This document shows, one piece after another, positions 20,810-51,469 of a stretch of DNA of 64,000 nt. This DNA comes from Mobula hypostoma. Taxonomy: Eukaryota. The stretch spans positions 23,932,001 to 23,996,000 of the forward strand of contig NC_086121.1 of the NCBI RefSeq assembly GCF_963921235.1, written 5' to 3'. Under the pieces are notes generated by a model. That model was given only the letters and a program-made list of their open reading frames with translations. It made no database searches and was not told where the DNA came from. How positions within the stretch are numbered: the stretch's first letter is position 1; the number at the start of each line of letters is the position of its first letter. A program made the position numbers and the translations under genes.

Positions 20810-22541
20810 GTAAGTATTGATGAAAATTTATTAATTATTTAAACATTTTTTTTTCAATGGCTAACTTAGAAATTATATTGAATTAATTGCATGATACGAA
20901 TTTGCAGGTACAAGTGTGGCACACAGAGGGTTCAACATTGCAAGAATTACCCAAGCAAATTCTAATTTTCTTGACTGAATTGGCAAAGGCGATATCGCAC
21001 TTTGCCAGAAAGTTTCCACTCTGCCACTGTGCTGAGTTTATCTTTCTCAGCAGAGTGGCAGTACAATTGAACTCAGTGGCCTTATGCAGAACAACACCGT
21101 GCTTAAAGAATGGGAATTTCAATTGTTAAGAAAGAATTGGGAGAAGTTGAAGAATAAGGTTATAGGAGGTTTGTGTTTGTAGAGAGAGTTGCATTCTAAT
21201 GAGGTTTAGTAGATAAGTAATGCACTATTACTAGGGAGTTTGCAAATTGAGTGAAGTGGAACTTCAAAAGAGATCATGGAGGGATTTGTGGGCGTTAGGA
21301 TTTGCTGAGTTATGCAGCTGTTATTGTAATTTTCTTGCTGTGGACTTTATTGTGGGGAGGCTTGACGTTTGAATTATAGACTTAAGTGCAAAGAGGAAAT
21401 TTTTAAATGATGTAACTGACACCATTTACCCATCCTCTTCAAGAGAGGGGATAAAAAGTTAGTTAAAGTTAGGATTGGGTGATGTCTTCCCGTTTACTTG
21501 GTGAATGTGTTTCAGCGATATCCTTGATGCTGGGACATCGCTGATGGAATTGACACTTACATTTGTGTCAGTGTTCACTTGACTCATCTTCCTCTTTAAG
21601 TTGTGGCAGCTAGAACATAAAACCCGCTTTCCCTCTACCAGTGATGATGTCAATTAACTACTCGAGCATAAAGTCAGCTTGTATTGGAAGTGCTTTCATG
21701 TATGTTTACTCGGTGGGATGGGAGCTAGTTTAAACAGTTGAAGTATTTTAAACAATTTATAAATCTTTCATAATTTCAATTATGGATCTAGTGTGGGGAA
21801 ATGGTTTCATTACAGAGTGGTTTTGAAAAAAGGTTGGCATGGATGTGAGCCAAAAGGTGATTTTCTGTGGTGTAAAATTCAATGCTCTTTGACTTTGTAT
21901 TGTTTCCCTTAAGATGATCTGTTAACACCTATCAATTCCTGCAGTATTTTTGGCTACTTACAGTTTGTATGGGGTCTGTTTAATTTGCTTGCAAATTGAT
22001 ATAATATATTAAAGTTTGCAAACCCAGATTATGCTTTCACTTCCTGAAGGTGTGCCACTCCCACCACTCGAAGATATCATGATATTCCTTGGTTTTCTTT
22101 TGAACTGTTACTTTTAGCCCATCTCTCACTGCCTTCACAGATCAAAGGATTAGTTTCATACTTAGTGACATAATCATATCCTTGGCTCATACTCTGAAAC
22201 TAGAACGGATTTAGTTACAGCACTGTTGTTGTTAGGGAGTTTGGGTAAACTCTACTGTCATTTGTTTAGAATATAGCTTTACATTTTTAAGTGAGTGAAA
22301 ATGGTGTGAGACAAGACCTAAATACTTCATAAAGAAATAGTACTAAGTGATGGAACATTAAAATAAATTATTAGATGCTGATTGAGTTCCTATTTAGGTC
22401 CCTGATTCTTTTATTAATTAAATATTCAATACCTGTTGTTTATTTCATTTTTTTTTGGAGGTCACATTCTGTTATCATTGTGGACTCAGCAGTAATGGTC
22501 CAAGAAATTTGTGATGATGGTAATGTTTTCTTTTGGTACAG

Positions 22542-22662
22542 GAATATAGCATTGTTATTGAAAAACTCTCCAATGGGGAGTGGATCCCATTTGATGGGGA
22601 TGACATTCAACTGGAGTTTGTTCGCATTGATCCCTTTGTTAGAACCTACCTAAAGAAAAATG
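22542..22662 (+). CDS. DDOST: DDOST exon 9
   Basis: AG/GT bounded. [40 protein letters not shown]. Confidence 0.95.
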
Positions 22663-23199
22663 GTAAGTAGAATGACCTAATGTCAGGCAAAGTAACATGT
22701 TTCCATGCCTTTGAATTAAGAATATGATGGGTTATTGGCTGAAATGTGCCAATTTTTTTTCTGTGAGCATTTAATATCTAATTTGAATTGTTCCACCAGG
22801 ATTTGCTGCTGCTCTGATGGGCCTGGGTGAATCATTCAAGAAATTTGGGAGGGGGAGGTTTGTAACCTGAGAATACAAGATGCTGAATGAGTTTCTACGT
22901 TCATAGATTACACTTCCTCGACAAAAATCCTTAAGTATGACAGTTTGGTTAAATTTTACTTGGATTGTTGCATGAGTAGTTAGGAAGCTGGAGTATATTT
23001 ACATTTCTCTAGCAACACCCTCTCTGCACCAAGGAAAACTCATTCCAAGTTAAATGTGGTACTTTTGGAATTCCATCTGGGATTGGGAAATGGCTGTCAT
23101 GATTTATCTTGAAGATAATGGTCACGATAGTTAACACTACCAGTAATCCAGAGACTTGCAAAGCAGTTTGGAAATTCTATAATTAGTGGTGTTTGCTTA

Positions 23200-23480
23200 T
23201 GGAGATACAGAGTGGAATAGGCCCTTCTGGCTCTTTGACCCATGCTGCCGAGCAATTCCCTGATTTAATCCCTGCCTAATCATGGGACACTTTACATTGA
23301 CCAACTAACCTAACAACAGGTACACCTTTGGACTGTGGGAGGAAACTGGAGCACCTGGAGGAAACCCATGCGATCACGGGGAGAATGTACAAACTCCTTA
23401 CAGGCAGCAGTGGGAATTGAACCCGGGTCTCCAGTACTACTGTAAAGCATTATGCTAACGACTATGATATTGTGCTGTGA
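23200..23480 (-). mobile_element. tRNA-derived SINE
   Basis: Reverse B-box GGAATTGAACCCGGGTC and core GGAGAATGTACAAACTCC. Related copies at about 37520-37850 and 61770-62000. Confidence 0.65.
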
Positions 23481-23749
23481 TATTCAAAAAATATCAAAGA
23501 CAGTTTTAATGAGAAGTTAGTTACTTTTGCACTCTGAGGATATATTACTGCAGGAAAATAGAGCTTTCTATTTTGGACTTTAGACACATCAACATAAAGC
23601 TCTTGATCTTCTGAATAGCTGTCTCTTTTTATGTAAAAAGGTTCCTGTTGTCCATCTCTGGTGAAGAGTTGTAATTTTAAGTTGCCTCTTTTCTAAAAGA
23701 TGGGACAATGCATGAAGAGTTTCTTTAAAGCAAAAGGAAATAGGGAAAG

Positions 23750-25620
23750 TGTGTTGGATGGCAAGTAAGACTGAAATGCAGAGTGCTAAGACCTTCACAC
23801 CCAACTATCCTGCTGGTGAATGTGCAGTGTCTGGAAAACAAAATGGAAGACCTCTGAGCAAGATTGCAGTACTGGAGGGACAGCAGCAACTGCTGTGTTC
23901 TTTGCTTCATGGAAACCTGGCTCACCCCTACCTAGGACACAGACTGCAGCCTGAGGATTTCACCATCCACCGCAAAGACAGGACAGTGGAGTCTTCAAAG
24001 ATAAAGGGAGCAGTTTCATGATTAACCAATCATGGCGCACAGATGAGGCAGTTCTGTCTCAGTCCTGCTCACCTGATCTGAAACATCAGGTGGTCAAGTA
24101 TCATCCATTTTATCTGCCGTGGGAGTTTTCCACCGTCATCCTGGTCGTGTTGTGCATTATACTCCTGGCCAACGTCAGGCAGGCACCGGATTTGCTGAGC
24201 ACCATGATCATCAGTCAAAAAATAGCACACCCTGATGCCTTCCTGATCATTGTGGGTGATTTATAACCACAGCAGCTCGAAGTCTCTGACCAACTACCAC
24301 CAATATGTCACCTGTGGAACCAGAAGAGCCAACGCACTTGACCACTGTTACACTATCATCAAGAGCACTTATGGTGTCATGCCACGTGTGCACTTTGGCA
24401 CGTCCAATCACTTGGCTGTTCTTCTACTCTCAGTGTACGGGCAGAGACTGAGGACTGCAGCACCGGTGGTAAGGACCATGAAGGTATGGTCAGGGGAGGT
24501 GAGGCAGAAGAGTGCTTATAGGACTGTTTTGAATGGGTGGAGTGGATAATATTCAGGGATTCATCTTTGAATCCGAGTGAATATGCCACAGTTGTCACTG
24601 ATGTAATCAAGATATGTGTACTGCACATAGCCAAAGCAAAAGCTGTGGATGAATCAGGAAATTTGCAGACTGTTGAGTTCCAGATCTGTGGCATTCAAGA
24701 ACGGTGATACAGAACTATACAAGAAATCCAGGTAGAACCTACGGAAGGCTATTTTAAGAGCAAAAATCAATTCCAGTTGAAGTTGGAGATGGAATCAGAT
24801 GAACATCAGCTCTGACAGGGTTTTCAAGCCATTACTTCCTACAAGGCGAAACCTAACATTGTGAGTGGCTGTGATGCTTCACTCCCAGAGGAGCTCAACA
24901 CCTTTTATGCACACTTTGAAAGAGAATAAAACTGCTCCTGAGTGACCCTGTGATCTCTGTCTCAGAGGCTGATGTTAGAACATCTTCGAAGAGGGTGAAC
25001 TCTTGCAAGCGTCAGACCCCAATAGTGTACTTGGTCAGGCACTGAAAACTTGTGCCAACCAACTGGCGGGTGTGTTCAAGGACACCTTCAATTTCTCAAT
25101 TGGTAGTTCCCACCTGCATCAAAAGGCCAAAGATCATATATCAGTGCTCAAGAAGAGCAGGGTAAGCTGCCTCAACAACTGTCGCCCAGTTGCATTCACA
25201 TCTGCTGTAATGGAAGTGCTTTGAAAGGTTAATCATGGCCAGGATCAACTCCTGCCTAAGCAAGGACCTGGACCTGCTGCAATTTGCCTATCGCCACAAT
25301 AGGTCTAAAGTGGATGCTATTTCACTGGTTCTTCACTAGGCCTTGGACCACCTGGACAATAGCAATACCTATGTCAGGCTGCTGCAAATTGATAACAGTT
25401 CAATGATCAACGCAGTCGTACCATCAGTACTAATCAACCAGCTCCAAAATATGGGCCTCTGTACCTCCCTCTGCAACTAGATACTTGACTTCCTCACCAG
25501 GAGACCACAGTCAGTGTGAATCAGAAATAACAATTCCTCACTGACAATCAACCCTAGTCACCTCAAGGATGCACAATTAGCCCAGTGTTCTTCTCACTCT
25601 ACACCCGTGACCATGTTCAA
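23750..25620 (+). mobile_element. Decayed Rex1/Babar-type LINE (endonuclease to RT start)
   Basis: Fragments HPDAFLIIVGD, LDHCYT, SNHLAVLL, LKTCANQLAGVF, CRPVAFTS. Confidence 0.75.
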
Positions 25621-25639
25621 ACACTCAAAAAAAAAGTCA

Positions 25640-27790
25640 ACAACACAACTGATGGTTGAGGGGTAATAACTGTTCCTGAACCTAGTGGTATGAGTCCTGA
25701 TGCTCCTATACCACCTTCCTGATGCCAGCAGCATGAAGAGAGCATGTCCTTGGTAGAGGGGGTCCCTATTGATGGATGCTGCTTTCCTGCAACTGTGTTT
25801 CATGTAGATGTGCTCAATGGTGGGAAGGGTTTTATCTGTGATGGACTGAGCCTTATCCAATAATTTTCAGAGGGTTTTCCATTCAAAGGCATGTTTCCAT
25901 ACCAGGCTGTGATGCAACCAGTCAATATACTCTCCACCACACAGCTATAGAAGTTTGTCAAAGTTTTAAATGTCATGCTTAATCTTCGCAAACTCCTAAG
26001 GAAGTAGAGGCACTGCCGTGCTTTCTTCATAATTGCCGTTACATGCTGGGCCCAGGACAGGTCCTCTGAAATAATAACACCAAGGAATTTAAAGTTGCTG
26101 ATGCTGTCCTCTGATGACAGCTGTTTTGTGGACCTCTGTTTTCCTTCTCCTGAAGTCAATAATCAGCTCCTTGGTCTTGCTGATATTGAGTAAGAAAGAG
26201 GTGGTTGTTATGGCGCTGATCAGCTGGATTTTTTAATCATCCTATATGCTGATTCTTCACCACCCTACAACAGTGGTATCATCACTGCTAGCCTTGACTA
26301 TTGCATTGGAGCTGTGCCTAGACACTCAATCAGAAGTGTAAAGCAAGTAGAGCAGTGGGCTAAGCACACAGCCTTGTGGTGCTGATGGAGATTGCAGAGG
26401 AGATGTTGTTGCTGATCTGAAGTGATGGGGGTCTGCAAGTGAGGAAATTGATCCAATCGCATAAGGAGGTATTGAGGCCAAGGTCTTGAAGCTTGTTGAT
26501 TAGTTTTGAGGGGATGTTGGTATTGAATGCTGAGCTGTAATTGATAAAGGTCCTCTTGATGTATACATCTTTGCTGTCTAGATGTTCTAGGGTTAAGTGA
26601 AGAGCCAATGAGATGGTGCCTGCTGTGGACTGTTGCTCTGGTAGGCAAATTGGAACAGCAGATCCAAGTCACTTCTCAGGCAGGAGTTGATATGTTTCAT
26701 CGGCAACCTCTCGAAACACTTCATCACTGTCAATGTTAGTGCTACTGGATGATAGTCATTGAGGCAGGTCACCATGTTCTTGGGCACTGCTATAATTGAA
26801 GCTTGCTTTAAGCAGGTAGGTGCGAAAGCAAGAAGTTAAAGATCTCAATGAACATTCCATCCAGCTGATCAGCACGGGTTTTGGCCAGGTACCCCATCTG
26901 GGCTGGATGGTTTCCCCTCCTGAAGGCTGCTCACGTGTTGGCCTCAGGAACTGAAATCACAGGATCATCAAGGACTGAGTGAGTTTGCGATGGTTCCTCC
27001 ATGTTTTATGGATCATAGAGATCATAGAAGGCATTGAGCTCATCTGAATGCAAAGCTCTGTTGTCGCCCATGTTGCTTGATTTAACCTTATAAGATGTGA
27101 TAATATTTGAGCCCTGCCACAACGGTCAAGAATCCTTTGTTGAGTCAAGTTTAGTTGCCACTTCACCTGTGAGAAGGTTTTCGGGTGATCATACCTAGAT
27201 CAGTTGTAACTTTCTTGGTCAGCAGATTTGAATGCCTCTGATCTGGCTCTCAGCAGATTTTGGATCTCATGGTTCATCCGAGGCTTCTGGTTGGGGAAGA
27301 TTCTGAATGATTTTGTGGGGACACACTTGTCTGCAACTGTTTTAATAAAGTCCGAGACAGCCATGGTGAATTCATTCAGATCTACAGATGAGCCTTTGAA
27401 CGTGGCTTAGCCACCGACTCGAAACAATCCGTAGATGTTCCTCTTCCTCCTGCGACCACCTCTTTATTGTCCTAACCTCTGGAACTTTGCTCCTTAGCCT
27501 CTGCCTGTATGCAGGTAGAAGGACAGCCAGGTGATTAGATTTACGAAATGTTGTCTGGGCATGGAATGGTAAGCATTCCTTATTTTAGAATGACAGTGGT
27601 TTAGTGTGTGCAACCTTTGGTGCTGCAGGTTTGGTCTGCTGGTAACAAGCCTGGTTGAAGTCTGTGATTTGAAGCTTGTCAGGATGGCCTCTCTCTTGTT
27701 TGGAGACTGCGTCATGAAGTATCTGAAGTGCTTGATTATAGTCGAGTGCTGGTGGTATGTAAACTGTGGTCAGCAAAGTCTCGAGCAAAT
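25640..27790 (-). mobile_element. Decayed Rex1/Babar-type LINE in opposite orientation
   Basis: Fragments [13 protein letters not shown]...MKCFERL, FINYSSAFNT, FKFLGV.ISEDLSW, RLYFLR-like, RFRNSYYP. Confidence 0.75.
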
Positions 27791-28323
27791 TGTCTGCAGA
27801 TGTACCGTGGAGAGCATGCTAACTGGAGGGGCTGCTGCACAGGGTTGGAGAAAGCTGCACCGTGGACGCTAGCCTCTTCAGCATCGAGGCCTTCTTCAAA
27901 AGGCAGCACTTCAAAAAAGCAGCATCCATCATTAAGAACTTCCATCACCCAGGACATGTCTTCATCTTATTTCTACCATCAATGAGGAGGTACAGTTGCA
28001 TGAAGACACACTCAAAGTTTTAGGAACAGCTTCTTCTTCTCCGCCATTCAGATTTCTGAATGGACAATGAATCCATGTACACTACCTCACTTTTTGCTCT
28101 TTTATTTGCAGTAATTTAATTATAGTTATTTTTGTAATTTATTATGTATTGCACTGCTGCTGCAAAACAAACTTCATGACTTATACCAGTGATATTAAAT
28201 CTAATTTTGAGGTAATGGTTTGCTGCCTGTCTGAGCCAGTCATGTACTTTATACCTTTGATATTCTTGCCACACTGTCTTTTCAGTTTGAGAATTGCACA
28301 GTAATTAATTCAGAGCTTATTGA

Positions 28324-28482
<159 letters not shown>

Positions 28483-28784
28483 TAAATTTAACTGTGGCAA
28501 AAGACTTTCAAGAATCAAAATTCATTTCTGGTATTGTTAGGACACTCCATTCAGCCTTTTCCTGTTTATCTTGAAGCTCATCTGCCATAAATTTGCCCCC
28601 AAACCCCTTCTGGTCTTGCACCCTTATCTTCTGCTGCAGTCCTACAGCCATCTTAGATATCTAGGCCTCCTTAATTCAGGTTGCGAAAGGAATTGGTCTC
28701 TTCCTGGGCACTAACTTCTGATATCTTCCCCAAAATAGTCATGCTCTCAACCTTTCTTCCTTTAAGAAATCCTTGTAACGAAGC

Positions 28785-29488
28785 TTCTCGCCATTTGTGG
28801 TATTATCACCTCAGGTAATTTGGTTTCACTTTTTGATAATCACTCCATTGAAGCACCTCAGGATAGTTCCCTTCATCCTGCTGTCACGTGTATTTTTGTT
28901 GTGATGTGTGCTAGGGCAGCAGTCTTTACTGATCACACCACCAAGAAATGCCCAGAGCAGATGTTGATGTAGATGTTTCTGTTCCTGGTCAAAGGCTGAA
29001 TACAGTTTGTTCTGATTAGTATTTATTTTCTGTGATCGAACAACATCTTTGCTGTAGAGAAAGATGCACTCTTCTGGACTCTTTTTGGTTATTCCTCTAC
29101 GTTCATTTCTGTGCTTTTGTCTGTAGTCTCTCCCGCCAATCATATGCAGTGAAAGGTGTGTGTAAATAGTTTAGGTACGTATGGTGGAATGAAGGTAGAG
29201 GAGTAACCAAAATGAGTCCAAGAGAGTGCATCTTTTCTCTACACCAAAGAAGTGGTCCAACCACAAAATAAATAGGACACACGTGAGTTCAGCCTTTGAC
29301 CAGAAACAGAAACATCCGCTCTGGCCATTTCTTGGTGGTGTGATCAGTAAAGACTGCTGCCCTAGCACACATGACAACAAAAACACACGTGACAGCAGGC
29401 TGAAGGGAACTATCCTGAGGCGCTTTAATGGAGTGATAGCAAAAAGTGATACTAAATTACCTGAGGTTAATACCTCAAATGGGGAGAA
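28785..29488. repeat. Long imperfect inverted duplication (about 300-320-bp arms, about 80-nt spacer) in DDOST intron 10
   Basis: 28785-29107 is the reverse complement of 29187-29488, e.g. TGTGTGCTAGGGCAGCAGTCTTTACTGATCACACCACCAAGAAATG is exact. The ORF track shows matching peptides on opposite strands. Confidence 0.92.
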
Positions 29489-29972
29489 TCATCTTTGCAT
29501 GCATTTCTTACCTTTTCATTGTGTGAATGGCAAGAAAAGTAAAAGTTAGTCAATTTCCTCTCAGGGATATATTTTTGCATTTATTTTAAAAAGCTGAAAC
29601 ATGCAACTCATTCAACCAGTTGCAATTGTTGCCGTGTTAGAAGAGTGTAAGTGCTTAGCTTTTCATTCTTTTCTTTACTTCACAGATTACTTCCCACTTA
29701 ATCTGATCACAAAACTGGTTTTTGAGGATCTCTTTGAAAGATATCCAAATGTTGCCCTACTCGATTGAAACTTGGCCAAGTGACAATAAATAAAATTCTT
29801 TGTAGGGAAGGTTCATATTGATTTGAGATTACCGATACTAAAATAGAATTTAAAAAAAAGCTAGTTGAGTTGGCTCATTTTCACCCCCACAAACCCTGCC
29901 TCTGTAAAGTTGCTAACACAATAGTAGCTGTGTTACTGTGAATCTCACCAAATCTGTTTCTTTTTGTTCAAG

Positions 29973-30122
29973 GTATCTGTTCGTCCTCTTCAGCACACAC
30001 AGTACGAACGTTTCATTCCCTCTGCCTATCCATACTACGCCAGCACCTTCTCCATGATGGTTGGCCTCTTCTTGTTCTCGGTGGTCTTCTTGCACATGAG
30101 AGAGAAAGAGAAGGCGGAGTGA
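29973..30122 (+). CDS. DDOST: DDOST exon 11 (TM helix and KxKxx ER-retrieval tail)
   Basis: [49 protein letters not shown]. The exons sum to 1344 nt = 447 aa. Confidence 0.95.
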
Positions 30123-30748
30123 GGGATTGGAGAGCGTTCTCTATTCTGGGTATCTCCAGTGCTGAGAGCTTTAAGTTGGTTTAAATTGGTGAGGGATGAT
30201 TGCAAATTCTAGCCTTTCTGGAGCTTATGCCACCTCAGGAGCAACTAAACTACAAATCCCATTTATTGTGATCCCTCCGTTGATCAGAGGTTACCATGTG
30301 CTGCAGATTGCAGAAAGTGGGTGTATCAATTTGAGTGTTGATTTCTTTTGCACTGTAGAATAAATAACTTCGTTTTTAAAAAAAAAACTGCCAGAAGTGT
30401 CGGAGTCATTTTCCATTAAGAGACTAAAACCCTTGGTTAAAAATAATGGAGGAAACTGAAGAACTTCTGTTTCTTCAGCAGTTGCATTCAAAGTTCCAGA
30501 AACATAAGAACAACAAAATCTGCCAAGTTTTCCGACAGGCGAACTCCAGTTCAATTGGAAGATCTGAGTTAATAGAACCACTTGTGGTCTCTTTGGCGGG
30601 ATCATATCATTTAGCAAAAGAGATTAAAATAAGTGAGCAAAATTTTATTTTCAGATCAAATTATGTTTTTTAAGAAAAATTCTCCCCAGCACTTAATTCT
30701 TGCACCTACATTGATGTAACTTCTCGATTTATGTTTCTTATCATTGGA

Positions 30749-31806: not shown

Positions 31807-31944
31807 ATGTTACTCACCGTATACTGTGTGCGGCGCGACCTGAGTGAGATCACCTTCACCCTGCAGGTGGACGGCAGCCTGGAGCTGGAGACCTTCCGGG
31901 CGCTCTGTGAAATGGAGAGTAACGTTCCCGCTGCCGAGAGCCAG
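31807..31944 (+). CDS. DDI2: DNA damage-inducible 1 homolog 2, exon 1 (UBL)
   Basis: [46 protein letters not shown]. Donor CAG|GTGAGA. Confidence 0.95.
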
Positions 31945-36051: not shown

Positions 36052-36190
36052 ATAATCTTTGCAGAGAGGCCGTTAACAGATGATCATCTGACACTGAAAG
36101 CGTATGGACTGAAAGATGGTGATGTACTGGTGTTGCGACAGTTGGACAGACCACCAGTACAGTCTAGTCTACCGCTCCCAGGTGTAACAG
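36052..36190 (+). CDS. DDI2: DDI2 exon 2 (UBL)
   Basis: IIFAERPLTDDHLTLKAYGLKDGDVLVLRQ... Donor CAG|GTGAGA; an alternative in-frame donor follows 36181. Confidence 0.9.
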
Positions 36191-37132: not shown

Positions 37133-37396
37133 GACTTCCCAGGATTGATTTCAGTGGCATCTCAGTGCCTAGATCACTGGGGGTCAGAAATCCAGGGTCC
37201 GGAGCAACTAACCAGCACCAACCAGTGCCAACTCCCAGTACCTCTACTGTATCTGCTCCCTCCATGACACCTTCACACAGTTTGGAAAATAATCCAGCGT
37301 TACTCCGGGACATGCTTTTGGCCAATCCACATGAGCTGTCACTGTTGAAGGAGAGGAATCCCCCATTGGCTGAGGCTCTTCTTAGTGGAGATGTTG
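37133..37396 (+). CDS. DDI2: DDI2 exon 3 (linker and HDD)
   Basis: GLPRIDFSGISVP...NPALLRDMLLANPHELSLLKERNPPLAEALLSGDV. Confidence 0.93.
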
Positions 37397-39050: not shown

Positions 39051-39177
39051 ATAAGTTTACAAGAGTGCTTCGAGAGCAGCAGTTGGAACGCGCCCGCCGT
39101 GAACAGGAGAGAATCCGACTTCTGAATGCTGATCCCTTTGATCTGGAGGCACAGGCTAAAATTGAGGAAGACATCAG
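39051..39177 (+). CDS. DDI2: DDI2 exon 4 (HDD)
   Basis: [43 protein letters not shown]. Confidence 0.95.
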
Positions 39178-39551: not shown

Positions 39552-39679
39552 GCAGCAGAACATTGAGGAGAACATGACAATTGCAATGGAAGAATCGCCA
39601 GAGAGCTTTGGTCAGGTGGTAATGCTCTACATCAATTGTAAGGTTAATGGGAATCCAGTTAAGGCATTTGTAGATTCAG
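39552..39679 (+). CDS. DDI2: DDI2 exon 5 (retroviral-like aspartic protease, catalytic Asp)
   Basis: [42 protein letters not shown]; the DSG motif is split by the intron. Confidence 0.95.
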
Positions 39680-41273: not shown

Positions 41274-41402
41274 GAGCACAGATGACGATCATGAGCCAGG
41301 CATGTGCGGAGAGATGCAACATCATGCGCTTGGCTGACAGGCGGTGGGCAGGGATCGCTAAAGGTGTTGGAACACAAAAAATTATTGGCAGGGTCCACTT
41401 AG
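41274..41402 (+). CDS. DDI2: DDI2 exon 6 (RVP)
   Basis: [43 protein letters not shown]. Confidence 0.95.
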
Positions 41403-43032: not shown

Positions 43033-43136
43033 CCCAGATTCAGATTGAAGGTGACTTTCTCCCTTGCTCCTTCTCCCTCCTGGAAGATCAGCCAATGGAT
43101 ATGTTGCTTGGACTCGACATGCTCAAAAGGCATCAG
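43033..43136 (+). CDS. DDI2: DDI2 exon 7 (RVP)
   Basis: [35 protein letters not shown]. Confidence 0.95.
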
Positions 43137-43970: not shown

Positions 43971-44163
43971 TCTTTAGGAGCCTTTATTGAATATATTTTA
44001 CTTAAATTCAATGGTTCTAATTGTCCGTGCTGATTTTAAACTCTTATGTAATAAGACAACATTTTCAATGTAAGCTACTCCTGAAGATCTTCCTTAGTAT
44101 TTGAAATAACCAGTTTAATTTCCATTCTTTTAAATGTTGTTCTTTATCCCCTTCCTCTTGCAG

Positions 44164-44353
44164 TGTTCAATTGATCTGAAGCGCAATGTACTGGTTATAG
44201 GCACCACAGGCACAGAGACACGCTTCTTATCTGAAGCAGAGCTGCCAGACTGTGCCAGGTTGGCATACGGTATGCCACGAGATGATCTCCGCCCTGAGGA
44301 ATTAGCAGATCAAGAGCTGGCTGAAGCACTACACAGATCAGCAGAGGAATCTG
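44164..44353 (+). CDS. DDI2: DDI2 exon 8 (RVP end and UIM)
   Basis: [36 protein letters not shown]...[19 protein letters not shown]. Phase-1 donor G|GTAAAT. Confidence 0.95.
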
Positions 44354-45217
44354 GTAAATTTTCAAAAGAACTCTTAGAATCGATAACAATTTGTAGGCTT
44401 CTTGTCTCCTGATGCAGCCACCCCAATGCATATATAGGAAATTTCCTGTAGAGGCTTTATATGATAGATTGGGTGATGCTCTGGTCTCTTATGATTCTCA
44501 ATAAGCAAGAAGGTAAGCAAAAGTTATTAGTTTCTGCTTAAAGCATATCATACACAGAATTTGTGGAATATCTATAGTATGTTGCTCTGTGTTTACAAAG
44601 ACAGCTTGCATTTGCTTGGGTGCATCTCATTGCTTGTGATACCCATAAAAAGTAGCAGATTTTTGTCTGAGACTAGCCAATTTAGTATTTGGAGATTAGA
44701 ACAGAGTTCAGTCCTGCTCTTGCTTCAATCTATGTGTGTGACAGGACTGGAGCTACTGGACAGTGATCAAAGACGGGAATCCTGGCTCATTTCTCCTCCA
44801 ACACCAAATTTAAGTCACCTCGGACTTCTTAACAATTCTGTTCTAAGTGATTCAGTGCTCAGTTTCAGGAAGAGCCTTAAACCATTTATAGTTAAAACCA
44901 CTTAAATTTACATTCTCTGTTACAATTTTAAGTTTAAAGAGAAATATCACGTCAATAATATCACTTATAATTAACAAGACACCAGTTTCTGTAGTCCACT
45001 CTTTCTATGATCAGTCCAACCTCCTTGCCAACTCCATAAGCTGAGACTACTAATGGCTATTGTTACAGTGCATACTAATGCCAAGTTATGTTTGTATGGA
45101 ATCTTAATCTGTTCGGTGTATGTAGTGACCTGTAATTCTGTGTGCATGCTGCATGCTTCAGTTGACTAATCGAGTTTGCCGTTGTGGTTTGGTTTTGTGT
45201 TTGTTTTATCCTAACAG

Positions 45218-45234
45218 GACGCCGGCCTCACTGA
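45218..45234 (+). CDS. DDI2: DDI2 exon 9 coding part (GRRPH*); the exon extends to a donor after 45278
   Basis: U-rich tract plus CTAACAG acceptor. A short basic tail and TGA give a 411-aa protein. Donor CAG|GTATTT. Confidence 0.75.
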
Positions 45235-46147
45235 TGCATGTTGCACTTTTGCTGCCCTTGAAGATGATCACAGTCCAGGTATTTAACGCTCTGTTACTTT
45301 TAAGTAACTTAAGAATGTGGCACGATACCTAAATATTCATATAAGGGATCTTGCAGTCAGTTAGTCATTCAGTTCCAAGAATGTGTTTTCTTATCGTGCT
45401 CTTTCTGAACTGAAGATGAATAACACACTGCACTAAAAGGGAACTACTGTCTGAGTCATGCTTTCCATTTCAGTGGAAGACAAAATACTGAGGTGAGCTG
45501 CTCAGAAATCTTAACTATCCTACAAATTTAGAGCGGTCAGCCTTCTCATCAAATGGGGTTTTGTTTTCTGGAAAAAAAAGTAGGACAGTCATTGCTGAAA
45601 ACTTAATACTATAATGTGCAGTTGGACCGAAAGTAAGAATTTTTTTTTCAAATCCTGTGCCTTTTTTTTGGTAATTTGATAAGGAAATATTACTGCAGCT
45701 CACCTCAGATATTTGTACTTTCTAGAGGAACTCATTGTTTCCAAAATAATTTTGTAATTTTGGGTCCATTATTTTTTGCTCCGTAGTTTATCCCAGATAA
45801 GGTTTAGAGTCTTTGTTACTGCTGTTTTTTTTTACTTTCCCTCAGCTGTAGGCCTTGCTATCTAAGTAGGAAAAATTCTCAATAATTTCTGCTGTAGTGG
45901 AGGCTAATGTAAACTTAGCCAGCCGGTACTGTTTTCTTGTTGGTATAGAATCAGGGGTATGTTGTTTGAAATTACTTTGTCTGTAGCTTGGATTGAATTT
46001 AGCTCAGAGACAGGCCAAACTATAAAGAAATTACATTTCTTATTGTGTCTTTTATATTTTTTGGATATTCCGAAGTATTTTATGGCCAGAAGTACTTTTG
46101 AAGTACGGTCATTATTACAGTGTATGGAATGAAGCAATCAATGTGCA

Positions 46148-46336
46148 GGAAGACGAGGAAATCTGCAGATGCTGGAAATCTAAGCAACACACACAAAATG
46201 CTGGAGGAAGATAGCAAGCCAGGCAGCCTCTTTAGAAAAGAATAAGCACTTGACATTTGGGCTGAGACCCTTCATTAGGACTCTCGGCTAAGATGCTGCC
46301 TGGCCTGCTGAGTTCCTCCAGCATTTTGTATGTGTT
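46148..46336. mobile_element. Foldback PLE-derived element
   Basis: Inverted pLTR halves flanked by GCAATCAAT(G/A)TGCA (46134-46147 and 46337-46350). A similar foldback lies at about 46890-47100. Confidence 0.65.
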
Positions 46337-48188
46337 GCAATCAATATGCACTCTCTTATTAAACACAGCGTAATAACCAGATAGTTACGTGGAATAAAAA
46401 ATTTAAGTCTGGAAATGGCAGTTAAATCTCTTGCAGATTTTTAAGTACCATCATGTTTTTTTTCAGTGTTACTCACCTGAAAGAATTTAACATGGAGTCT
46501 AGGACTCCTTTACTACTGCATTTGTAGGGTCAGTTTACATTTTTGTGCTCAGATCTCTGCAGTGGGACAGAGGTGAGATCATCCTAGCAAATGGCACAAT
46601 TGATGCTCTTGACAAATACAACCCTTTTGATTGGCAGATCTGCATTTTGCAGGTTGAAGCACATACCATCTTTGTGTAGCTGTGTTGTGCTGTCAAGAGC
46701 AATGTTTCCACATGTAAACTAAACCCGTAATTCACCTCTATTAGGAAAAAAATGGTTGTTTGAAGAAAGAAAGCTCCTGCCCATGGAAGATATTGAAGGA
46801 ATGCTGGAAGATCCCAGCAAAGAAAGGTGAATGGCGGCCTTTCACAATGACCAAAGAATGTCCCAAGGTATTTTATGTAAATGATGATGACAACACACAC
46901 AAAATGCTGGAGGAACTCAGGGGGCCAGGCAGCATCTATAGAAAAAAGTATAATCGACATTTTGGGATGAGACCCTTCATCAGGTTTTGGCCCAAAACGT
47001 CGATTATACTCTTTTACTAGATGCTGCCTGGCCTGAAGAGTTCCTCCTGCATTTTGTGTGTGTTGTTTGGATTTTCAGCATCTGCAGATTTTCTCTTGTT
47101 TGTGACCGTCATACCATATTGGTTAGGAAGAAATATTATGCTAGACACCATGAAGAAATTCTGTTCCTTTTTAAACAATTCATGGATTATTTGATGTCCG
47201 TTTGCAGAAGCAGACTGTGCCTCTGTTTAATGCCTCGTTTTCAGATAGCGTGCGTCAGTCCCTCATTGGACTACCAGCTGGAGTCACAAGAGTACTGCCA
47301 TTTATTCGGGGCATGGAATTCAGCCTCGCTAGCCCCATCAGATACTAGCTCAACGATCCCACCTGTTGACTCTTTATAGCTGACTCTATCACTAGATAAG
47401 AAAACTACGTAGTAGCAGAGGTCTATAATTTGTACTTCATAACCGTGACCTTGCACCCTCTTTTCCTACTGCTTTTGTTTACTTCCCTGTTTCCTTTCTT
47501 CCATTCTATATCCTGTGCATTACTGTAAGCTCACTTAACTTTTTAAGCTTTTAAGTGTCTGGTTGCTATGATTTTACATTGTTCTTCCTGTGACAGTGGG
47601 ATTTGAGCTTTTTTCTTCACCTCATCACTTCCAGCATCAGCTGTCGCAAGCAGCTTCAGGAAGCTTTGAAACTCAGCTTCCTGATAATATATCTGCATAT
47701 ATTCCAGTGAACGTTTTGATTTTTTTTTTAGCCTTTCTATGTCTTATTCACAAACTAGTCTGAATTCTCCTTAACTTTGCAGACTTCTTAGAAGCAAAGA
47801 AGAGAAGGGAGTCATTTGTTCCGCTTTTGGGGTAGAGTTGCTTGCCAGCTTCAAGTGGCTGTGACTTGAATTCGTAAATGCTTTTGAACTTCCCTGTTAC
47901 ATTCTCCTGATCAATGAGGAGAGTAGGTTGTCATTATTTTTAAGTTATGAGCTTGTCAGTGATTAAAATTGAGCTATTATATGAAAGGATTATACTGGGT
48001 TTATCTAAAGGAATCAAAATGTGATCCATTAAATTGATCATTAGTATTGGCAAACCATCACCAGTTATACATTGTAGAGAAACCAGGAAATAATATTGGA
48101 AATGTTGAGAAATTTGTCTGTAAACTGTTTTGAAATGTGGTGTATACATAGTTGTAATTCTGGATTCCATTTTCTGTTTTTGTTTTAG

Positions 48189-50125
48189 GAAACGAAAATG
48201 GCAAAACTACCTCATTGGAGAGCCCTTCATTACCAGCACCTCATCATCTACATCTTCCTCTTCCTATTACAAGAAGTGACCTATCAGAACTTCCCCAACC
48301 CCAAAATCAGTTGGACCGCTCTTTATCAGTTCCCGCTAGCCTTCCCTCACAAAACCAGAAGAAACTTGAATTTTCAGATGCAAAAAGCTTTCAGATCCCT
48401 GAGCGCATGGAAACCGAGGCAGAAAACCAGAAGCCTTTACAATCATTAGATAATCTGTTGACTTCTCTGTCTCCAGATAGTCTGTCTGCTTCTTCTCAGG
48501 CATCATTAGGAGAAAAGCACATACCCCAACACAAAAACATTTATTGTAGTCCACAGAACAGTCTGAAGCATCCAAGTTCAGATGCTGGCAATGAATTTCT
48601 GCCAAAACGTGTATTGACAGACATGAGTTCACAGAAAACTGGCATGGAAATGTATGATGCACAGGAAGACCAAAGTGAAAGAACAAAAACTCAGCTGGAA
48701 AACCTAAACAAAGAAAGAATGGATTTGGAGGAGCCACTAGTAAGAAAAACTGTAGAGTGTTCTCAATCAGTACAATCAAATACTGATTCTATGTTTGATA
48801 TGATTGTGGATAACACATCAACCCAAGTACCCTCAACTAATGGCTCCCCTAGTAGTAACGAAGTGCAGCAGCCCAGTGAAATTGGAAAGGGAATTGATGA
48901 TCCAGATACCAATCTGCAGCACATCACTGTACCATCTGAAATAGACGTCAGAACAGATGATCCGTGTAGTTGTCAGAAGAAAACTGAGATTGGTGGAAGA
49001 CCATTAAATGATGCTTTAATTGGGAACAATGAGATTTGTGATGCTGGAATGATGTGCTGCACAGAGCAGCAGGTAGAGAATGTGGCATCAACAAATTCAA
49101 ACATCCACAACCAGGAGGAGAAAGCCCTTATTTCTGAAAAGGAACTTGAGAAAAACTGTCCAAACTCCTGTCCACTTGAGGTGGATATACCTGTTGAGTT
49201 TACAAATGATGACACGGAAGAACAGTCTGAAGTTGTTTTTGATGTTGGTAAAAAGCAAGAAGAGATACATTTGTGTACTGAGATTAAAATGTCTTCCGAT
49301 CAGCAGCATCAGACTTCAGAATCCAGTCAGTATGATTCACACCTATCCCCTGTGGCCACTTTATTCGAATTGCATCGTGAATTAGTTTCTTCTTGTCAGG
49401 AAACTTCCTTGCAGGTGTCAGCCAAATTAGACGATCATAATCAGCCAGTCACAACAAATCAGGAAGAACACTTTCAGCAAATGGAGGTCTGTAATGAGTG
49501 CTTAGAGAATGATGCCTTAAATGAGCTATGTCTTAACGCAGAACTGATACCTGAAATGGAAAAGGAGCCAGAGTTGGCAGCTGAATCTGAAACTTCTAAC
49601 AGAGACATACCCATCCACATGACACATGATGAATCTGAGGAAATTTTGATACAGGAAACAAAGGACATGGATGGGGATTTCATTCTTGTGTCGAAACATT
49701 TACCTAATGAAATGGAGGTTTCCCCAAGTGACAAATTGTTGGAGGCCCAAGAATTATCACTACACAATATCAAATATGCATCTGACACTGCAGTAGTTAA
49801 AAGTAGTCAGACATCTCAAAGTACTGAGACGCATTTGGTAACACATAACGTAGGTAGTTGTGCAGAGGTTTCAGGTGCTTCAGTGATGTGTGAAGAGACT
49901 GTGGAAGCCACCATGGATCAACCTGAAAGGCATTCTCTGGATAGTCCTGCTGAACTATGCTCTTCAGATTTGTCAAACCAGCTTTTCCCAGCAGCGAACA
50001 TCGAACGAATAAGAACATCAGGATTTAGTCAGCAGGAAGCAGTGGAAGCTCTTGAACGTTGTCATGGAAACACAGATTTGGCTCTTCTGGTTCTTCTCGC
50101 AAGAGGAATTGTGGTTCCTACGTGA
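48189..50125 (+). CDS. RSC1A1: RSC1A1-like terminal exon: acidic disordered region and C-terminal UBA domain, in frame with DDI2 exon 8
   Basis: Open frame of more than 636 codons ending FPAANIERIRTSGFSQQEAVEALERCHGNTDLALLVLLARGIVVPT*, the RS1-type UBA. Internal ATLFELHRELVSS resembles the RS1 LKELHELL segment. Strong TTTTCTGTTTTTGTTTTAG acceptor ending at 48188. Confidence 0.88.
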
Positions 50126-50154
50126 AGTAGTTCAGTATATAACAGTTGCACAAT

Positions 50155-50160
50155 AATAAA
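50155..50160 (+). terminator. Candidate polyadenylation signal for DDI2/RSC1A1
   Basis: AATAAA 30 nt after the stop. A distal AATAAA lies at 51170. Confidence 0.4.
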
Positions 50161-51469
50161 CTGGTACTGTTTAGACATCTGGGCTGACAAATGTGTGCAT
50201 CTTTAATTGAAAGAAAGGAAGTTTAAATCAGAGTTCACTTTTTTAGTATTGTGTAACTGGTTTTAACAATTGATTATCATCACATACAGCAAACTTGTTA
50301 CATTACGGCAGCATTTTCTGTGCCATCCTGAAGTTATTAATCCACTCCAGCATATCCACAGGTACCCATAAACCCAAACAACACACCTATTTAAATATTG
50401 TACCTAATGCTACTTAGAATTAAAAATGCCTATGATATTTTTCACTGAATATTCTCAAAGATGGTTTGCAACAGCAAGACAAAGGACATAAGCGGTGGGC
50501 TTAAATTCTTGGGAGATGATATATGCACAAGATTCATGGTGGAATCATGTTAGATTTTAAACTATGTGCAAGGTCAGAAAATGCCTACATAAGATTTGAG
50601 TTTTGGTGTTTGATTTAAGTATAGGGAGAAGTGAAAAAATTCTATCATGTTTCCTCCATAGAAGTTCAATGTACTTTGCCTTCTGAGTACAGAGTTTTTT
50701 AGAATTCTTTTACTCTTTTATAGCCTTTATCAAATCTGAGTCAGCAACACCACCTTTGCTGGACATTGGTCTTGTGTAACTGAGGCATATTCAGTATTCA
50801 CACTTGGCTAAAGTTATATTTTGGATTTTTTTGTTAGGCGCCACTAGTGATGTTGCTGTAATCTTCAATGGGTGCTTATTGCAATCTCTAATCTTTTTTT
50901 TAAACCAAATAAAAAAAATTATTGCCAACAATATTGGTTTGTTTGTGCTGATGATCATACTTATGAAGATATGTGATAAAGGCTCGAAATTTGAACTGTT
51001 CCTGTTTCTTACCTCTGATAGCTGATTTCAGCTAAAGTGCCAATACTAGTCGTTAAGCCATTAGGAACAGTGCAAGAAGACGATCTTTATTCCATGCTGG
51101 GCATGTACAGTAAATGTCTGAAGCTGTTCAGCTGTCCTCAGTATAATGTTTTCTTTTTAAAAAATATTAAATAAACTTCTTTTGTCATTTGCATTCTTCA
51201 CATGTTGACCTGTACAAGTGGAACTTATTAATGAGCTACTCCCATTGGTGATGTTCTCTTTTGAGAGCTGGTGCAGTCTAGTTTCCGACGGGTATAGACA
51301 GGTGCTGTTGGTTATCAGTTTCCAGAATTTCTGTCTAGCACTGATGAAAGACAGATGATATACTTCCAAGTCAGAATTGTGTGCAACTTGGCAGACAACC
51401 TGCAGTTGGTGACGTTCCCATCTATTTGTTCCCTTGTCCTCCTTGATGGTATAGGTCATGTTTGAGATA

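Follow-up and report, generated by a model that had tools for sequence, protein, structure and literature searches.

A stop-carrying exon of DDI2 in the ray Mobula hypostoma and its predicted skipping to a UBA-bearing, Ddi1-like isoform

Here we analyse the gene DDI2 in 64,000 nucleotides of the genome of the ray Mobula hypostoma (NCBI RefSeq assembly GCF_963921235.1, contig NC_086121.1, positions 23,932,001 to 23,996,000 of the forward strand; hereafter the window, in whose own numbering all coordinates are given). We propose, with a probability of about 0.7, that one DDI2 pre-mRNA gives two proteins by way of exon 9, a 61-nt exon that carries the DDI2 stop codon, and that skipping of this exon joins a terminal, RSC1A1-like exon encoding a UBA domain in frame to the protease. 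With exon 9 included, the product would be the canonical DDI2 of 411 aa, with the domain order UBL-HDD-RVP-UIM, and the RSC1A1 frame would stay untranslated in the 3' untranslated region (UTR). With exon 9 skipped, exon 8, which ends in phase 1, would join the terminal exon in frame and give a protein of 1051 aa (roughly 116 kDa) of Ddi1-type architecture, in which some 595 aa of acidic, disordered linker separate UBL-HDD-RVP-UIM from a UBA at the C-terminus. The presence of UBL, RVP and UBA on one polypeptide is frame-compatible in the window and predicted in relatives of the ray, and the fused DDI2 is a conserved, already annotated and probably real alternative isoform; in the window itself we infer the exon-9-skipped form from the conservation of the frame and from the gene models of other species.

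Results

DDI2 and the terminal exon share a frame

The translation of DDI2 exon 8 (44164-44353; this and all features below lie on the + strand) begins CSIDLK and contains, at 44317-44340, the sequence LAEALHRS, which matches the UIM-like motif L-A-E-A-L-x-x-S of the vertebrate DDI2 C-terminus (PMC4962041); the exon ends TCT G^gtaaat (^ marks a splice border or join throughout), in phase 1. Exon 9 (45218-45278) is bordered by the acceptor cctaacag^ and the donor CAG^gtattt, and its inclusion gives the reading G^GA CGC CGG CCT CAC TGA, which ends the protein at GRRPH with the stop codon at 45232-45234. The coding part of the terminal exon (48189-50125; 1937 nt, 644 codons plus the stop) follows a strong polypyrimidine acceptor, ttttgttttag^, and reads after exon 8 G^GA AAC GAA AAT GGC, with a frame that is open from 48189 to the TGA at 50123-50125. 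It is 3' UTR in the exon-9-included mRNA and becomes the C-terminal 645 residues after skipping. Exons 1-8 sum to 1219 nt, so that together with the terminal exon they make a coding sequence of 3156 nt, or 1052 codons, with one stop, at the end. An earlier reading of the window (the original prediction) had claimed the phase 1 end of exon 8 at 44353, the ending of the 411-aa product in exon 9, the acceptor and open frame of the terminal exon and the length of the joined product; all of these were borne out, the phase by sequence reading and splice-site fitting. Its acidic linker of roughly 600 aa also stood, the region of about 595 aa having a pI of 4.4, with D+E at 18.5% vs K+R at 6.9%.

The upstream exons of DDI2 lie at 31807-31944 (exon 1, with the ATG at 31807 and the start of the UBL), 36052-36190 (exon 2), 37133-37396 (exon 3), 39051-39177 (exon 4), 39552-39679 (exon 5), 41274-41402 (exon 6) and 43033-43136 (exon 7), and were placed by tblastn with the fused model of Heptranchias, by splice-site fitting and by the spliced RNA contig L003 (Logan SRR13269324), which comes from another batoid. 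This contig also supported exon 8, together with sequence reading and splice-site fitting; exon 9, together with sequence reading; and the terminal exon, together with sequence reading and tblastn. The spliced DDI2 product contains the catalytic motif VDSGAQ (of the D-S/T-G-A type of RVP) and shares 91-92% identity over 406 aa with models bearing PF09668/PF13975, and its UBL and HDD were assigned through near-identity to two models (P0004 and P0005) that carry PF00240 and PF24669. The UBA domain, with the conserved tail LLARGIVVPT, was located at 49991-50122 by profile and Pfam comparison. By sequence reading, the first AATAAA 3' of the stop is at 50155-50160, and the alignment of the RNA contig continues to about 50557.

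The join recurs across jawed-vertebrate gene models

Public proteins were searched exhaustively with a profile made from an alignment of the terminal exon, with local blastp and with a search centred on the junction. The RefSeq entries named "protein DDI1 homolog 2 isoform X1/X2/X3" (955-1090 aa) of five chondrichthyans, Heptranchias, Pristiophorus, Chiloscyllium, Stegostoma and Callorhinchus, all have the junction SAEES^G(K/N)ENGK, and the fused model of Heptranchias is collinear with exons 1-8 of the window and then passes straight to 48188-50122. The junction-centred search returned 264 long proteins matching the junction region (E of 1e-5 or better), and of the public gene models with a length of 700 aa or more, at least 141, drawn from all jawed-vertebrate classes, cross the junction with the same join, for which the consensus is ...LAEAL(Q/H)(K/R)Sxx(E/D)(S/A)^(G/E/D)xxxx(K/E/Q)TTS(L/P)... 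Among fishes the fused models come from sharks, chimaera, coelacanth, sturgeon, paddlefish, gar, bowfin and many teleosts; among tetrapods, from frogs, salamanders, caecilians, turtles, crocodilians, squamates and many birds; and among mammals, from platypus, marsupials, bat, rat and macaques. Both the NCBI and the Ensembl/UniProt pipelines produce them, usually accompanied by a short isoform of about 405-413 aa. A word-based search with the same profile found no match outside chondrichthyans; the exhaustive search did match beyond them.

By this comparison, the arrangement of exon 8 and terminal exon would date to the ancestor of jawed vertebrates. Conservation of its phase in relatives had been set in advance as the test on which the original prediction could fall, and it was passed strongly. 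The novelty then claimed, exact conservation of the frame in a chondrichthyan, was overstated, since RefSeq holds the fused isoform in at least five others.

The terminal exon has no start codon near its beginning

Upstream of the terminal-exon acceptor the frame is closed by a TAA at 48155-48157, 10 codons away, and downstream of it 72 codons pass before the first in-frame ATG (48407-48409, codon 73, by sequence reading). In the exon-9-included mRNA, the RSC1A1 frame again lacks an ATG over the 109 codons that can be traced upstream, across exon 9 and into exon 8. For want of a nearby ATG, the terminal exon could not give a full-length RS1-like protein of its own from an AUG, and judged by its frame it cannot stand in the window as a gene by itself.

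The codons that would be out of reach are nevertheless kept. The exon opens with G(N/K)ENGKTTSLE(S/T)PSL, a stretch that is near-invariant in ray, sharks and elephant shark, and G(N/K)ENGKTTSLESPSLP is almost unchanged from chimaera to ray, with a single indel, of 3 nt. In the fused models the first Met comes anywhere between 11 and 256 codons after the junction, and in 53 of the 141 more than 30 codons after it, which means that in many lineages the conserved start of the exon is unreachable from an AUG of its own.

Off the RSC1A1 frame, 10 nt from the start of the terminal exon, an ATG whose Kozak context is good (gaaAAAATGG) begins an open reading frame (ORF) of 83 aa (48198-48449). This ATG is kept in Heptranchias and Callorhinchus and lost in the RNA contig of the other batoid (AAACGG).

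Exon 9 looks like a regulated exon

Exon 9 was read in five genomes and measures 61 nt in the window and in Heptranchias, 60 nt in Callorhinchus, 63 nt in zebra finch and 49 nt in fugu; the context of its stop, ..CA(C/T)TGATGCAT.., is constant in all five. Its length thus drifts while the phase between exon 8 and terminal exon is fixed, which places the constraint on the skip junction and not on a frame running through exon 9. In all five genomes 38-46 nt separate the stop from the last junction, downstream of it (44 nt in the window). Under the rule for nonsense-mediated decay (NMD), which sets the limit at 50-55 nt before the last junction, the mRNA of the short isoform should escape this pathway.

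Only 14 of its 61 nt are coding, yet exon 9 is 92% identical to that of Heptranchias and 82% to that of Callorhinchus, the level of a coding exon. The 80 nt of intron upstream of it are the best conserved of all the upstream flanks of the gene (identity of 0.88 with Heptranchias and 0.75 with Callorhinchus, against 0.56-0.79 for exons 1-8 and 0.81 and 0.68 for the terminal exon). Sequence and flank alignment place two RBFOX-type UGCAUG hexamers in this flank, at 45143-45148 and 45150-45155, 63-75 nt 5' of exon 9, and both are present in all three chondrichthyans; finch and fugu have one or two GCAUG 35-82 nt upstream. Four of the five species have one more UGCAUG that overlaps the stop, the exonic copy of the window being at 45235-45240. 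Within 160 nt on either side of exon 9 each of the five species has 2-3 GCAUG, where 0.2-0.4 are expected per 380 nt. Upstream or exonic RBFOX sites favour skipping, and by this position rule alone tissues that express RBFOX richly would be expected to favour skipping of exon 9. On these features exon 9 looks like a regulated exon. An Rfam scan of 44000-51000 gave no match.

In all five genomes the DDI2 stop overlaps an ATG (UGAUG; 45232-45236 in the window, compare 17811-17873 of L005 and 5215-5263 of L006), and in rat-like and some other tetrapod RNA contigs this ATG shares the frame of the RSC1A1 ORF (N-termini MMHVVCVCC..., MHVVFAAA...). This arrangement hints at a coupling of termination and reinitiation in some lineages.

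Transcripts and the possibility that exon 9 is constitutive

The 3.6-kb batoid contig is about 87% identical to the window, and its blocks match the exon borders exactly, including 45218-45278 and the acceptor at 48189. This exon-by-exon alignment directly supports the exon model and the mRNA that includes exon 9. It is also where an explanation that we consider unlikely begins, namely a constitutive exon 9: the agreement in frame of exon 8 with the terminal exon would then be a relic of an ancestral Ddi1 that annotation pipelines turn into long models, and the RSC1A1-like ORF would be 3' UTR or would be translated alone from the ATG at 48407 (572 aa). In its favour, and weighing against skipping, are the facts that this contig, the only one found, contains exon 9; that no transcript or peptide crossing 44353^48189 was seen, in any species, in the RNA contigs and ORFs inspected; and that the remaining RNA-derived ORFs inspected begin in exon 9 or within the terminal exon, the ORF calls on RNA contigs starting at an internal Met (P0008). 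In addition, the ratio of nonsynonymous to synonymous substitution rates (dN/dS) for codons 1-72 of the terminal exon, which is noisy on small counts (0.30-0.92, below 1 in all pairs but above 1 in one sub-window), is not clearly below that of the rest of the exon (about 0.5 in its middle and 0.16-0.35 in the UBA). The fused proteins cited here are, moreover, predictions throughout, and the sample of 141 is biased, since species with a broken frame would give no fused model. Also to be weighed against skipping are the UGCAUG sites, which are consensus matches and not evidence of RBFOX binding, and the annotation of Mobula birostris, which makes the terminal exon a protein of its own (653 aa) with its start in an optional exon, 9b.

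A constitutive exon 9, however, fits poorly with much of what has been described: (i) a relic frame should decay over more than 400 My, yet the frame is open from the acceptor in every locus read; (ii) the indels at the start of the exon come in multiples of three; (iii) the exon-start motif is kept in the 141 models although the first Met lies up to 256 codons downstream; (iv) the length of exon 9 drifts and the skip junction stays in phase; and (v) translation of the RSC1A1-like ORF by itself would have to begin more than 1.4 kb into the mRNA, behind the full DDI2 ORF, with no obvious route to it. The locus of the batoid contig, which was picked independently of the fused models, is likewise frame-compatible and open. 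We therefore prefer an exon 9 that is skipped in part of the DDI2 transcripts.

Exon 9b and other routes to the RSC1A1 frame

Exon 9b (46745-46867, with an alternative donor after 46827) contains an ATG at 46831 that is in frame with the terminal exon, and gene models of Mobula birostris and Hypanus sabinus use it. The exon resembles a shark short interspersed element (SINE), with ..CTTTCACAA..CCAAAG..TCCCAAGG.. and two alternative donors. It is conceivable, but in our estimate quite improbable, that this lineage produces its UBA mainly on a separate, RSC1A1-like protein of about 653 aa that starts here, from transcripts that begin at or contain exon 9b, in place of a DDI2 fusion. The Mobula birostris model (P0001), whose protein is 98% identical over the terminal exon, starts MAAFHNDQRMSQ^G in exon 9b, and the same ATG, in phase 1, occurs in the window. 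As against this, exon 9b looks like a shark SINE that has become an exon, Heptranchias lacks its ATG, no match to the exon was found in Callorhinchus, and when spliced after exon 8 it puts a stop into the DDI2 frame; not being deeply conserved, it cannot explain the conserved codons 1-72. The two are, besides, compatible, and a protein begun in exon 9b would not preclude the fusion by skipping of exon 9.

As a conserved route the ATG of exon 9b was accordingly rejected, being lineage-specific, SINE-derived and missing from Heptranchias. Two further candidates were set aside. The RSC1A1 frame could be entered through exon 9 from exon 8, and models of Scyliorhinus and Cetorhinus do this, keeping exon 9 and beginning at an out-of-frame ATG within exon 8; in the window that frame lacks an ATG, and the length of exon 9 differs in Callorhinchus. 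The ATG that overlaps the DDI2 stop (45234-45236) opens, in the window, the +1 frame, for about 100 codons, and not the frame of RSC1A1. None of these routes explains the conservation across jawed vertebrates.

The UBA domain and its relation to Ddi1

The C-terminal 65 aa of the terminal exon match the Pfam UBA family (PF00627) with 24.5 bits against a cutoff of 22.4 bits, as do 18 of 22 orthologues; scored within the whole exon, the domain reaches 20 bits, below the Pfam cutoff. When a profile of this region was compared with all solved structures, the best single-domain matches were yeast Ddi1 (2mr9, E 7e-5) and S. pombe Mud1 (1z96), NUB1 being first overall only because the scores of two UBA domains are summed. 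A TARA Oceans eukaryotic contig (P0115/L004; TARA_SAMEA6048309 metagenome scaffold, 99-731), from a marine eukaryote, holds in a single exon the end of a DDI protease region, a UIM-like ELAEAMDRS, about 35 aa of Ser-rich linker and a UBA with 39% identity to that of the window, including the LLAR..P tail. This C-terminus of UIM, linker and UBA looks like the unexpanded state, and its UIM-like motif means that the UIM may be older than the long RSC1A1-type insert, at odds with its being regarded as specific to vertebrates.

Taken with the matches to Ddi1 and Mud1, the unexpanded C-terminus lends support to the proposal, already in the original prediction, that the RSC1A1-like exon is the ancestral last exon of DDI2, and agrees with the published derivation of the RSC1A1 UBA from that of Ddi1 (Sivá et al. 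2016). The exon's orthology to RSC1A1/RS1 is seen in its position after DDI2, its UBA, its IVVPT tail and its conserved start motif.

Upstream of DDI2, OST48/DDOST-like exons occupy about 22520-30360 of the window, on the + strand. DDOST lies directly upstream of DDI2 in Callorhinchus and Heptranchias, and the order is retained in this ray.

Discussion

We hold it possible, with the odds somewhat against it, that exon 9 is an ancient, RBFOX-type regulated switch, common to all jawed vertebrates, between a UBA-less protease and a UBA-bearing, Ddi1-like DDI2. If so, the textbook loss of the UBA from vertebrate DDI2 would be wrong for one isoform, and some of the effects ascribed to RS1/RSC1A1, knockout phenotypes included, may reflect the loss of the long DDI2 isoform. 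RSC1A1 knockouts, which remove the C-terminus of this isoform, would then call for a second look. DDI2 activates NRF1/NFE2L1 and thereby controls proteasome recovery; a long isoform that regains the UBA would offer a direct hypothesis for how DDI2 recognises heavily ubiquitinated substrates.

Part of this picture was already available. The fused join is present in public annotation for many vertebrates, and its evolutionary basis has been published, Sivá et al. 2016 (PMC4962041) having derived the RSC1A1 UBA from ancestral Ddi1 and described all vertebrate Ddi1-like proteins as being without a UBA. Their work and ours share this link between the RSC1A1 UBA and Ddi1, and theirs is silent on a fused isoform and on a stop-exon switch. 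Our search of the literature (open-access papers) found no description of the fused isoform, and Sivá et al. 2016 was the only paper it returned that links the two genes. There is consequently a gap, in that RefSeq and Ensembl hold the fused isoform as unremarked "X1" predictions and the searched literature has vertebrate DDI2 without a UBA. What is added here is the phase-locked skip junction across a variable exon 9, the NMD-safe position of the stop and the conserved, UGCAUG-bearing flank. For the window alone, the result is the correct annotation of an isoform that had been predicted before, a further instance and not a new kind.

Among known systems, the closest are the predicted "DDI1 homolog 2 isoform X1" proteins of Callorhinchus milii (XP_007905422.2, 1082 aa) and Heptranchias perlo (1090 aa) and the corresponding Latimeria entry (UniProt H3A669, 1052 aa). 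The window has the same join and the same domain order, with 83-92% identity in the DDI2 part, and a short isoform of about 411 aa accompanies each of these models. Unlike these species, the nearest relative, Mobula birostris, has its terminal exon annotated as a separate "uncharacterized protein".

Mammalian RSC1A1 (RS1) has been described as an intronless gene at the 3' end of DDI2, whose product regulates SGLT1 and other transporters through RS1-Reg motifs. It has in common with the window a homologous terminal exon, a UBA and the tail LLA(K/R)xIVVPT, and in many sources the fused models bear the name RSC1A1. The two differ in where a start codon is found: tetrapod models have a Met at codon 11 or 12 of the terminal exon, the window only at codon 73.

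With the UBL-RVP-UBA shuttle proteases yeast Ddi1, S. pombe Mud1 and Drosophila Rngo, the window shares the UBL, the RVP with its DSGA catalytic motif and the C-terminal UBA. In contrast to them, its RVP and UBA are separated by a UIM and some 595 aa of acidic, disordered insert, and its UBA would be optional, being tied to the skipping of a stop-carrying exon.

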